Source: Macrostomum lignano
Taxonomy: Eukaryota
Assembly (NCBI GenBank): GCA_002269645.1
Contig: NIVC01000920.1
Coordinates: 248,001 to 312,000, forward strand
Reading direction: 5' to 3'
Length of the DNA stretch: 64,000 bases
The notes under the pieces are model-generated. The model did not search any database, had not been told where the DNA came from, and worked only from the letters and a program-made list of their open reading frames with translations. A program made the translations under genes and the position numbers. Each line of letters opens with the position of its first letter. Position 1 is the stretch's first letter. Below, one piece after another: positions 1,018 through 22,906 of this stretch.

Positions 1018-4000
1018 TCAGCGCAGCTGGCTGGCGGCCTCGGCAGCCGCAGTCTTGATGGCGGTCCTCAGCCGGTCGCACAGTTGGACAATTCTGCCTG
1101 CCTGAGCCACCAGCGGAGCCGCCTGCCGTGACAGCGCCGCATCCGGCCGGAAGTGGAGCGACAAGTCGACGAAGGGGTCGGACTCGGAGGCGCTGTTCGC
1201 GTAGAAGTCGCCTTCGGCTACGATGGCGTCAACGGCAGCGGCAGGGTCGGGGTCGGCCAGATGGAACCAGTGGGCGCGACGCCGGTGCCGGATGCCGACG
1301 ATCCGGTCTCGCATTGACGGCGGCACCCGCTCGCTGACGCGGATGCGACCGCCGGGCGCCGCCCGGATGTAGGCGAAACCTTCGGTAGCGGCGTCTTTGA
1401 AGAGGCTCCGATGCAGCCCGGAGCCGGCGGCCACCGCGGCAGCGGTTGTCACCGTGATCCTCGTGTCGACGCCTCCACCGAGTCGATCGTCGTCTAAGTC
1501 GGTGTCCAAGACGGTGGCGTGCACCCAGTTGAGCTGGCGCTCTTCGACCCGCTCCAACTGCAGGCTGGAGTCGTGGTTGAGCACAGCCTCGTAGGAGGCC
1601 GACACCTTGACTGACAACTGCGATTGGGGGGTGAGAGTGGGATTCTAGTGGGGATTTTCTAATGCGTTGAGTGGGGATTTTCCACTGAAGGAATTAGGGA
1701 TTTTCCATTGAATGAGTTGGGGATTTTCCATTGAATGAATTGGGGATTTTCCATTGAATGAATCGGAATTTTCATTGTAGGAATTGAGGATTTTCCATTG
1801 AATGAATTGGGGATTTTCCACTGAAGGAATTAGGGATTTTCCATTGAATGAATTGGGGATTTTCCATTGAATGAATCGGAATTTTCATTGTAGGAATTGA
1901 GGATTTTCCATTGAATGAATTGGGGATTTTCCACTGAAGGAATTAGGGATTTTCCATTGAATGAGTTGGGGATTTTCCATTGAATGAATTGGGGATTTTC
2001 CATTGAATGAATCGGAATTTTCATTGTAGGAATTGAGGATTTTCCATTGAATGAATTGGGGATTTTCCATTGCAGGGATCGGGGATTTCCAACTCAAAAA
2101 TCACCTTCACGCCATGCCCCTGCCTGTCCGGCAGAGCCGCCGGAGCTTCCGTTCTCACGAATCCCAAACTTGACAAGGCCGCGGCGAAGATGGCGACGTC
2201 CAGAACCTCAGCCGGCTGCTGGCCGCTGCACCGATGTCGACGCAGCCGTTCAGCCATGGAAGTCGCCGACGCCGCCTCCGACTGCAGTGGGTACAGGCCG
2301 CAGCGGAAGCCGCAGCCCAAACGACGGTTTCGCCGAATCGATTTCGCTTCCTGTGCCTTCGGCGCCTCTCTGCGACCGCCGACGCCCCCACCGCCGCCGT
2401 TGCCGCGGCCCCCGACTTGCAGCGGCATCATTGGGATTCCGTCCACTTGATCGCGTTGGCCAGGCGGCGGCGGCGGCGGCTCCCGCGGCTCGAACTCCTG
2501 GCGCTCTGCCTGGCGCCGGTACTTCTGGCCCTTGGCTACGAAGGCGGCGGTCTCGGCCAGGGACAGAGTGCTCTGGGTGGCCGGCAGCGACTCGTCCGCG
2601 TTCAGCAGGTAGAACTGGCCGACGCGAACGGTCACCTCCAGGGAGGCGGGCAGCTCCGACTGGCCGTGGGGCAGGCCCGACAGCTGAGGGAATTTGATGG
2701 GATCTGAGAATGAGGGGATCTGAAGATTATGGGATCTGAAGACGATGGGATCTGCAGCTGATGAGATCTGAAGCTGATGGGATCTGAAGCTGATGGGATC
2801 TGAAGCTGATGGGATCTGAAGCTGATGGGATCTGAAGCTGATGGGATTTGAAGCTGATGGGATTTGAAGCTGATGGGATTTGAAGCTGATGGGATTTGAA
2901 GCTGATGGGATTTGAAGCTGATGGGATTTGAAGCTGATGGGATTTGAAGCTGATGGGATCTGAAGCTGATGGGATCTGCAACTGATGGGATCTGCAACTG
3001 ATGGGATTTGAAGCTGATGGGATTTGAAGCTGATGGGATATGAAGCTGATGGGATCTGAAGCTAAGGGGATCTGAAGATAATGGGGATATGAAGCTGATA
3101 GGATTTGAAGCTGATGGGATCTGCAGCTGATAGGATCTGCAGCTGATGGGATCTGCAGCTGATGGGATCTGCAGCTGATGGGATCTGCAGCTGAAGGGAT
3201 CTGAAGCTGAGGGGATCTGAAGATAATGGGGATATGAAGCCTATGGGATCTAAAAAACCAGGTTTGGGGATCAAAGCTCCGGAGATTCGCACCTGCCTGC
3301 TCATCACGAGGAACAGCCGCCTGGCAGCGGCCTCCAGCCAGACGTCGCGGTCCGGGCAGTCGCTGCCCAGACAGCGCAGCAGGCTGGCCGTCTTCAGTCG
3401 GTGTTCGCCCACCACGCCGGACACGCAGTTGACCAGCCGGAAGCGGCAGTGCTCGGACAGGCAGCGGTCGCCAAGCAGCAGGCTGGCTCCGTCCATGAAG
3501 TACCTGCAGGCCCGGCGCCGGTGGCAGGTGCGCAGCAGCCAGCCCGCCGCCCCGGCCATCAGGCGAACCTCCCGACGAAGCCGGGCGACCGCGCCGGCGT
3601 CGCCCTCGGCGGTGAGGCGCAGCAGGGGCGGCCTGTCGGGCAGCGGCAGCAGCTGCACCCTGGCACAGCCGGTGGCCGAGGCCAGCCGAGCTTCGTGAAA
3701 GCCGGCGGCACGGCCGAGCTCCTGGCTGAGGCGGTGCGGCAGCGTCTTGGCGAAGCGGGCGACGCCGGCGCAAATTCCGGCGGAGGCAGCGGCGGTTACC
3801 ATGGCAACGTCGCGCGAGTAGTGCAGCCGCAAGAGGGCGGCGCGGGCGCATTTGGCAGCGTACCGGACAGCCTCGGCCGCGATGATCACGGACTGTCCGG
3901 ACGGGATTGGCCAGCGGTAGGTCACGTGACTGTCCAGGCCCGCGCAGGTCCTGAAGAATCGCAGGATTCTGGCGCCTAGCGCGGCGGCGGCGTCGGCATC

Positions 4001-22906: not shown

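Follow-up and report, generated by a model that had tools for sequence, protein, structure and literature searches.

A seven-module RNA-dependent RNA polymerase gene of Macrostomum lignano, proposed as a single-chain counterpart of RNA-dependent RNA polymerase complexes

In the fission yeast Schizosaccharomyces pombe, the RNA-dependent RNA polymerase complex (RDRC) is made up of Rdp1 as its RNA-dependent RNA polymerase (RdRP), the helicase Hrr1 and the nucleotidyltransferase (NTase) Cid12, and the RDRCs of Tetrahymena are built from Rdr1 together with Rdn1 or Rdn2. Hrr1 is not known to be a helicase of the Dicer or RIG-I-like receptor (RLR) type. The nematode Caenorhabditis elegans possesses DRH-3, an RLR-type helicase whose C-terminal domain (CTD) binds double-stranded RNA (dsRNA) carrying a 5'-triphosphate (5'-ppp), as well as RDE-3 (MUT-2), an NTase of the Cid1 family, and PIR-1, an RNA polyphosphatase that acts on 5'-ppp ends but is a cysteine phosphatase and not an enzyme of the tunnel fold. 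Fusions of a helicase to an RdRP have been published for Dictyostelium, oomycetes, Hydra and Nematostella, and the helicases of such fusions form a clade apart from the helicases of Dicer (PMC4791657). Here we describe a gene on the minus strand of a 64,000-nucleotide stretch of the genome of the flatworm Macrostomum lignano (assembly GCA_002269645.1, contig NIVC01000920.1, positions 248,001 to 312,000; hereafter the window, to which all positions refer). We consider it likely that the region is a single M. lignano gene and that its product, an RdRP protein of seven modules, is a single-chain counterpart of these complexes.

The gene model was rebuilt from stop-to-stop open reading frame (ORF) fragments, the scores of GT/AG sites and the matching of phases, and the model given in an earlier note on this DNA was not consulted. 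The resulting gene has 19 exons and spans 21.9 kb, from an ATG at 22906 to a stop at 1018-1020, and its 18 introns, 17 of them GT-AG and one GC-AG, are all in phase. The coding sequence (CDS) of 8,466 nt contains no internal stop and encodes a product of 2,821 aa. The earlier note had arrived at one in-phase ORF of the same 8,466 nt and 2,821 aa over 18 junctions, and the junctions 6009/5476, 14625/13855 and 18028/15459 of its model were also chosen independently here. Its description of the introns as filled with repeats holds too, as mini- and microsatellite arrays lie inside nearly all of them, and its motifs were recovered at GSGKT (aa 203-207), DECH (303-306), QSRGRAR (620-626) and DLDGD (1568-1572), followed by an intact NTase set of YGS (1971-1973), SDVDL (1984-1988) and DCDIS (2055-2059). 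As an observation, the gene model lies far beyond what chance would produce.

A search with the whole protein returned the hypothetical protein BOX15_Mlig000965g3 (P0001), also of 2,821 aa, with 99% identity over 100% of the query; the two differ by 21 substitutions and no indels. The gene for BOX15_Mlig000965g3 occupies 26.8 kb of NIVC01000172.1 (locus L002, assembly Mlig_3_7). All 19 exons of the window gene align to L002 end to end and free of gaps, and the CDS projected in this way translates to exactly P0001; the rebuilt exon structure is therefore the one in GenBank. The window gene is a second copy of BOX15_Mlig000965g3, be it a paralogue or an allele/haplotype. Between the two copies there are 26 synonymous and 21 non-synonymous changes, and the resulting pN/pS of 0.28, although calculated from small counts, fits purifying selection. 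GenBank's annotation goes back to RNA-seq reads assembled with the genome as guide; before ORFs were called, the transcripts had been cut wherever trans-splice and poly(A) sites had been mapped experimentally (PMC5730564), and this origin lends a single mRNA transcript support that is real, though indirect. The L002 gene is 4.9 kb longer than the window copy while its exon boundaries are identical. Intron 2 measures 4,989 nt in L002 and 534 nt in the window, so the repeat arrays of the introns turn over rapidly between copies. The single GC-AG intron (intron 15, 5477-6008 on the minus strand, with the typical donor AG/GCAAGT after 6009) is kept in L002.

The protein begins with a domain that the earlier note had taken for an RLR-type CTD. 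Four cysteines in this domain (C3, C8, C61 and C64) are invariant in alignments of 14 and of 19 sequences. An AlphaFold2 (AF2) model of aa 1-120, built from 19 sequences, reaches a pLDDT of 93.8, and its top matches in a Foldseek search of the PDB are the CTDs of LGP2, RIG-I and DRH-3 (the DRH-3 structure being PDB 6m6s), with TMq values of 0.50-0.60, a probability of 1.0 and E values of 5e-3 to 7e-2, whereas other beta-tent folds such as MsrB and cereblon reach a TMq of only ~0.3. The M. lignano protein has no Pfam match to PF11648 (RIG-I_C-RD). The Rhopilema orthologue scores 18.6 bits against this family (cut-off 25.6) over profile positions 2-112 of 117, and a profile of the N-terminal family matches the DRH CTD (E 0.012) and Mis18/Yippee (Mis18 at 0.002) and also touches LGP2. 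The assignment of aa 1-120 to the RLR-CTD fold is supported by the predicted structure, and the domain would be a remote relative of these CTDs.

The helicase follows at aa ~175-680, and motifs I, II (DExH), III (TASP) and VI are all present, as is an insertion domain between the RecA lobes. Its best matches in the PDB are Arabidopsis DCL1 (3e-46), an ancestral Dicer helicase, LGP2, RIG-I, MDA5, Hef and FANCM; with the Dicer ancestor (9mw6), the alignment runs unbroken over query positions 55-521. Judged by these matches, which agree with the RIG-I-like helicase named in the earlier note, the domain is a superfamily 2 (SF2) helicase of the Dicer/RIG-I type with an insertion domain and intact ATPase motifs. 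The helicase core, the insertion domain and the zinc-binding CTD fold are thus common to the flatworm protein and to RIG-I, MDA5 and LGP2. However, the flatworm protein lacks CARDs, its CTD-like domain is N-terminal and so departs from the helicase-pincer-CTD order of RLRs, it is fused to polymerases and its family extends beyond Metazoa. An RLR proper is excluded because the CTD-like domain stands before the helicase and no CARD was matched by Pfam in the 2,821-aa protein; the protein is not an RLR, though two RLR modules are common to both.

The stretch between the helicase and the RdRP (aa 684-1120) is conserved across the family (14 homologues) but has no PDB or Pfam match, except for PH_met_RdRP in one member (E 0.029). 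From aa 1124 to 1712 the protein matches PF05183 with an E value of 2.5e-121, over profile positions 1-581 of 582, and the RdRP_head region (PF26253) follows. D1568, D1570, G1571 and D1572 are invariant among 14 homologues. The RdRP call of the earlier note is borne out by the full-length PF05183 match and the DLDGD at its expected place, and aa 1124-1900 make up the double-psi-barrel RdRP with its head, for which RNA-templated RNA synthesis is predicted.

When searched against the PDB as a single sequence, the NTase (aa ~1930-2260) had no match, and a family profile was needed. Such a profile, of 15 sequences, matches CutA (1.8e-13), TUT4 (4e-13), GLD-2 (3e-12) and Cid1 (1e-9) as well as TUT7, Tailor, Trf4 and MTPAP, with E values ranging overall from 1e-13 to 1e-7. 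The G-S pair, the S-D-x-D and a lysine never vary among the 15 sequences, all of which have D or E as the third acidic residue; in the flatworm protein the acidic residues are D1985 and D1987, separated by a valine, and D2057. PF22600 (MTPAP-like_central, cut-off 27) scores 30.3 bits on the ORF of exon 16. The terminal nucleotidyltransferase postulated in the earlier note is upheld by these profile matches and the conserved triad: the domain is of the Cid1/GLD-2/TUT type with its catalytic triad intact, and tailing activity is predicted. The catalytic motifs of the helicase, the RdRP and the NTase are all conserved across the family. Along the flatworm protein, the Pfam matches to DEAD/ResIII, Helicase_C, RdRP and MTPAP-like_central follow one another colinearly.

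Of the five modules in the earlier note, the four treated above are supported; the fifth, a KH domain that it listed last, is only weakly suggested, and not at the C-terminal end. A weak, sub-threshold signal is found at aa ~2275-2345, where a profile touches KH3 of hnRNP K, vigilin and IGF2BP2 (E 0.16-0.7), Pfam KH_1 matches one of 17 members (E 0.0034) and a KH-like pattern (LS..TGA.V.I ... G...AI..L..E) can be traced in which the GXXG is not conserved; this may be a degenerate KH-like segment. The C-terminal end is not a KH domain, as the last 392 aa have no Pfam KH match and fold, in the model, as a tunnel barrel.

This tunnel domain is a module that the earlier reader did not see. In the AF2 model of aa 2430-2821, a beta barrel, whose strands have pLDDT values of about 80-94, is joined by a long helix at the end. 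The best matches of the model in a Foldseek search of the PDB are the trypanosome guide-RNA binders RESC1/RESC2 (GAP2/GAP1), with E values of 3e-8 to 1.5e-6 over ~370 columns; Pct1 (9e-4) and Cet1 (6e-3), both of the TTM superfamily, YgiF (6e-3) and a mimivirus capping enzyme come next, and against BFVD the matches are giant-virus mRNA 5'-phosphatases, capping enzymes and LEF-4. On the strength of the model, aa 2430-2821 probably adopt a triphosphate-tunnel fold that is nearest to RESC1/RESC2 and to RNA 5'-triphosphatases of the Cet1 type. RESC1 and RESC2 form a stand-alone heterodimer with no detectable sequence likeness to the flatworm domain, which is part of a 2,821-aa protein and for which we do not assume catalysis. 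The RESC2 tunnel binds the 5'-ppp of guide RNA, although two of its three glutamates for metal binding have been lost, and RESC1/2 have been reported to lack homologues outside kinetoplastids (PMC10201420). In our family alignment (A3), x-x-x-x-[RK]-F-G is the pattern of the first strand, with no conserved ExE (in Cet1, the metal-binding glutamates of motifs A and C are E305, E307 and E496). A D-x-R-x-[RK] ladder is conserved, as is a single acidic residue in the last strand (FCELSL, which is FVDLSL in M. lignano); as read from the alignment, the glutamate pattern resembles that of the inactive RESC1/2. Since the metal-binding glutamates of motif A are not conserved, we tentatively favour 5'-ppp binding over hydrolysis in the tunnel.

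A profile of the C-terminal domain retrieved 287 cluster representatives at E <= 1e-3, mostly as the C-termini of proteins of ~2,000-2,900 aa or of fragments, and the short matches are mostly fragments on contigs of 2-5 kb. Sixteen proteins of 307-349 aa (the P0144 cluster, P0204-P0217, and P0145) have the C-terminal tunnel-like domain alone. They are nearest to the octocoral (Dendronephthya) type, some lie on contigs of up to 839 kb, and they represent genes that stand alone or, alternatively, gene models that were split.

The comparison with the known complexes is one of the same activities in a different arrangement. The RDRCs of S. pombe and Tetrahymena unite the same three activities, RdRP, helicase and Cid1-family nucleotidyltransferase, but as separate subunits and not in one polypeptide, and they contain neither a CTD-like nor a tunnel domain, both of which are present in the flatworm protein. 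For C. elegans, each function of EGO-1/RRF-1/RRF-3, DRH-3, RDE-3 and PIR-1 has a counterpart domain in the flatworm protein; the nematode components are separate proteins, and the flatworm CTD-like domain precedes the helicase rather than following it. Based on these parallels, we propose a model in which the protein would be a single-chain counterpart of Rdp1-Hrr1-Cid12 in S. pombe, of Rdr1-Rdn1/2 in Tetrahymena and of RdRP plus DRH-3, RDE-3 and PIR-1 in C. elegans. First, the NTase would add untemplated nucleotides to the 3' end of a template or product. The RdRP would then copy single-stranded RNA de novo, giving a product with a 5'-ppp. The N-terminal CTD-like domain and the C-terminal tunnel would hold or discriminate this 5'-ppp end, and finally the ATP-driven helicase would translocate on the duplex or remodel it and hand it to Dicer/Argonaute. 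The biological role would likely be the production of endogenous, anti-transposon or antiviral small RNAs. The identities of the modules and the conservation of their catalytic residues are results of the analysis, whereas the sequence in which the steps occur, their substrates and the targets in the organism are inferred. It is reasonable to infer that the protein may function as a self-contained RDRC-like amplifier.

Several points weigh against this interpretation. The roles of the modules in the full-module family are assigned by homology. On the full-length protein PF22600 scores 26.0 bits, below its cut-off of 27, and the C-terminal AF2 model has a moderate overall pLDDT of 71.5. A search of the C-terminal domain profile against PDB chains, with E values of up to 10, returned no RESC/TTM protein or other solved structure, and no Pfam family was matched, so that no link of the domain to RESC1/2 or TTM enzymes was found at the level of sequence. 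Internal trans-splicing may give rise to shorter isoforms. Furthermore, no secondary small interfering RNAs (siRNAs) were detected in Nematostella, which has similar helicase-RdRPs (PMC12768352), and the RdRPs of amphioxus are apparently unrelated to RNA interference (RNAi) (PMC6396948), so a role in amplification is not assured in animals.

These observations lend some weight to an alternative in which there is indeed one protein but the NTase, tunnel and CTD-like modules are non-catalytic scaffolds, the whole being a helicase-assisted RdRP or having a role other than amplification, such as dsRNA signalling or sensing. The Pfam scores of the NTase are weak, the tunnel appears to lack the ExE metal motif in alignment A3, like the inactive RESC1/2, and, beyond the Nematostella result, animal RdRPs appear to be functionally labile (PMC6396948). 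However, the triad and the lysine of the NTase are invariant or nearly so across animals, oomycetes, dinoflagellates and Diplonema, a degree of conservation that dead enzymes rarely keep, and the pN/pS between the two M. lignano copies likewise speaks against this alternative. We therefore regard the scaffold alternative as improbable and continue with the single-chain RDRC counterpart as our preferred interpretation.

The preferred interpretation requires that the modules be joined in one chain, and here the evidence comes from several directions. The exon 16 ORF is uninterrupted and carries both the RdRP head and the NTase palm, so the link between RdRP and NTase is independent of any splice. 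The Phytophthora nicotianae orthologue (P0029) is encoded by a single ORF of 8,061 nt (L001 1001-9061) that has no introns, compared with 18 in the flatworm gene; in both, Pfam finds DEAD/ResIII and Helicase_C N-terminal to the PF05183 RdRP on one chain. For P. sojae, the structure of the RDR gene was confirmed with overlapping cDNA amplicons and 5'/3' RACE (PMC4791657). A Trinity transcript encodes the complete ORF of a 2,433-aa homologue (P0025). In addition, ~40 colinear homologues of 2,300-2,800 aa have the same order and spacing as the flatworm protein, and the linker regions between domains are conserved among homologues in alignments of 14-32 sequences. The single-protein architecture proposed in the earlier note is thus corroborated by the exon 16 ORF, the projection onto L002, the intron-free Phytophthora ORF and the colinear homologues.

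One could nevertheless suppose that the helicase, the RdRP and the NTase are adjacent separate genes, or separate mature mRNAs produced, for example, by spliced-leader trans-splicing, and that the long ORF is an artefact of modelling. M. lignano does trans-splice many transcripts, and ~7% of its assembled units are polycistronic precursors (PMC5730564), but the identical GenBank model was made after cutting at just such experimental trans-splice and poly(A) sites. The helicase is separated from the middle region by a 2.6-kb intron (18027-15460) and an in-frame ATG lies in the repeat immediately upstream of exon 6, whereas the RdRP head and the NTase share the exon 16 ORF and the Phytophthora orthologue is one ORF with no intron at all. 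Merged models do occur in the family: in P0041, from Phytophthora aleatoria, a HIT domain is fused to the RDR, and P0041 is probably a merged gene model because the HIT protein of P. nicotianae is encoded by a separate upstream gene (L001 1-841). In contrast, the order of the flatworm modules and their conserved linkers are kept in the ~40 homologues. Given the exon 16 ORF, the colinear homologues, the intron-free Phytophthora ORF and the cDNA and RACE data from P. sojae, we consider separate genes very unlikely.

The homologues have a 4-Cys N-terminus, GxGKT at ~185, DExH at ~285, QxxGRxR at ~590, DLDGD at ~1470 and the NTase G[SG]..DxD at ~1850, and their hosts include a sponge (Oopsacas), cnidarians (Rhopilema, Dendronephthya), Artemia, dinoflagellates (Effrenium, Prorocentrum), oomycetes, Diplonema and a streptophyte alga. 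P0029 is colinear with the flatworm protein over its full length, so that its 4-Cys N-terminus, NTase and C-terminal domain are all covered. A subfamily of ~1,640-1,660 aa (P0028, P0030, P0032, P0034 and P0038) keeps the 4-Cys domain, helicase and RdRP and stops shortly beyond the last of these, with neither NTase nor tunnel domain. P0014, of 3,298 aa, carries in addition a dsRBD (PF00035) at its N-terminus.

Parts of this architecture were already in the literature. The oomycete RDR (P. sojae/infestans RDR1), RrpA/B/C of Dictyostelium and the helicase-RdRPs of Hydra and Nematostella (RDR-gamma group) likewise have DEAD/ResIII and Helicase_C ahead of PF05183, but they were described as helicase and RdRP alone, and the CTD-like, NTase and tunnel modules were not discussed (PMC4791657). 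Four RdRPs have been reported from M. lignano with no domain analysis (PMC5594548). In an amoebozoan survey, a figure legend credits two RdRPs with a PAP nucleotidyltransferase domain in addition to ResIII/DEAD and Helicase_C (10.1101/2023.10.19.562841). In open-access text, we found no paper on the CTD-like or tunnel modules, on the full architecture or on a one-chain RDRC reading. The earlier note knew of no such architecture, and its novelty was overstated, since the exact protein is in GenBank/UniRef, ~40 homologues have the same order, fusions of helicase and RdRP had been published and the amoebozoan survey mentions helicase-RdRPs with a PAP-type NTase. The architecture is neither unique to the M. 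lignano genome nor absent from databases; the gene joins a family of cellular RdRPs fused to helicases that is old, spans the eukaryotes and counts the oomycete RDR among its members, and whose full module set is under-described.

That the gene is foreign, acquired by contamination or horizontal gene transfer, is barely credible, because the GC content of its CDS (65.5%, against 34% in the adjoining 22-26 kb stretch), its best non-flatworm matches to protists at ~30% identity and the concern about contamination raised in PMC5594548 are outweighed by 18 spliceosomal introns whose tandem repeats are of the kinds present in the rest of the window, a GC content at third codon positions (GC3) of 78% beside 80% in a neighbouring amino-acid permease gene and 65% in a Snf7/CHMP6-like gene, a position within a 748-kb scaffold with at least two diverged copies in large scaffolds, and orthologues in a sponge, cnidarians and a crustacean.

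The exons of the RdRP gene and the other features of the window are listed in Table 1. Among the neighbours, the Snf7-family protein, with its myristoylation-type N-terminus, is probably a CHMP6/Vps20-like ESCRT-III subunit, and the FMR1/FXR-like gene is a genuine KH protein near the RdRP gene. Three reading frames run open through the 20-bp array, which yields spurious ORFs longer than 1,000 aa. Intron 7 of the RdRP gene contains a (TGTC)n/(GACA)n microsatellite that recurs at a distance of 27 kb, and both the 3' flank and intron 17 carry a related unit of 16 bp, ATCCCATCAACTTCAA / TGATGGGATCTGAAGC.

Table 1. Positions of the exons of the RdRP gene, their encoded modules and further features of the window
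Feature	Position	Strand	Description
Exon 1	22536..22906	-	aa 1-123; start ATG; Zn-binding RLR-CTD-like domain, Cys3/Cys8/Cys61/Cys64
Exon 2	21803..22163	-	aa 124-244; linker and Hel1 with motif I GSGKT (21914-21928)
Exon 3	20606..21268	-	aa 245-465; Hel1 motif II DECH (21083-21094), motif III TASP, start of Hel2i-like helical insertion
Exon 4	19456..19743	-	aa 466-561; end of insertion domain, start of Hel2
Exon 5	18028..18393	-	aa 562-683; Helicase_C, motif VI QSRGRAR (18199-18219)
Exon 6	14625..15459	-	aa 684-961; helicase-RdRP middle region, family-conserved (14 homologues); no PDB/Pfam match
Exon 7	13459..13855	-	aa 962-1093; rest of middle region
Exon 8	12424..12787	-	aa 1094-1215; start of RdRP (PF05183 from aa 1124)
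Exon 9	11080..11263	-	aa 1216-1276; RdRP
Exon 10	10130..10295	-	aa 1277-1331; RdRP
Exon 11	9146..9434	-	aa 1332-1428; RdRP
Exon 12	8279..8488	-	aa 1429-1498; RdRP
Exon 13	7693..7830	-	aa 1499-1544; RdRP
Exon 14	6816..7205	-	aa 1545-1674; RdRP catalytic loop DLDGD (7122-7136)
Exon 15	6009..6427	-	aa 1675-1813; end of PF05183, start of RdRP head; followed by GC-AG intron
Exon 16	4654..5476	-	aa 1814-2088; RdRP head AAWYF (5368-5382), LSFPWIV (5245-5265)
Exon 16, NTase palm	YGS 4993-5007, SDVDL 4954-4968, DCDIS 4741-4755	-	same ORF as RdRP head motifs
Exon 17	3293..4315	-	aa 2089-2429; NTase C-terminal PAP-associated-like part, weak KH-like segment (3545-3757), conserved linker
Exon 18	2105..2683	-	aa 2430-2622; first half of TTM/RESC-like domain, disordered basic insert
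Exon 19	1018..1617	-	aa 2623-2821 and stop; second half of TTM/RESC-like barrel, C-terminal helix
16-bp repeat unit	416-958 and 2695-3251		3' flank and intron 17
(TGTC)n/(GACA)n microsatellite	13069-13453 and 40128-40643		intron 7 and second occurrence
Amino-acid permease gene	26386-30714	+	multi-exon; AA_permease_2 and AA_permease_C on three ORF fragments; GC3 ~80%
GNT-I family ORF fragment	36095-36520	-	matches N-acetylglucosaminyltransferase I family
20-bp tandem array	42052-45223		3.2 kb, ~159 copies of TCCAGTGTTCTATCAGTCTG, 95% matches
Snf7-family gene	55870-56511	-	single ORF, 213 aa, starts MGSIFSK
FMR1/FXR-like gene	59385-63419	-	exons Agenet (62718-63419), FMRP KH0/KH (61858-62373), RGG-rich (59385-59984)

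The fusion provides Rosetta-stone evidence for a partnership of RdRP, helicase and nucleotidyltransferase whose members are known from fission yeast, Tetrahymena and nematodes as subunits of their own. This partnership appears as an ancestral unit that has been kept widely in eukaryotes, among them several phyla of animals that are commonly held to be without RNAi amplification, and the two extra end modules point to the handling of 5'-ppp ends within the same machine. A bolder reading, which we put forward tentatively and hold to be possible but doubtful, is that the family is an ancient pan-eukaryotic RdRP megaenzyme in which the three enzymes are flanked by two unreported RNA-5'-end modules, an N-terminal RLR-type CTD and a C-terminal RESC1/2-like tunnel. 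If this is true, and both modules bind the 5'-ppp of RdRP products, the helicase and CTD pair of the RLRs would predate Metazoa and would have existed within the RdRP machinery of RNAi, and the 'kinetoplastid-only' RESC1/RESC2 would descend from an RdRP-associated 5'-ppp reader; our homologue search found that Diplonema, a euglenozoan, carries the fusion. The family thus bears on the origin of RLRs and, speculatively, on that of trypanosome RESC1/2. After amphioxus and Nematostella gave negative results, M. lignano, for which transgenesis and RNAi tools are available, offers a tractable non-nematode animal in which to address the role of animal RdRPs.

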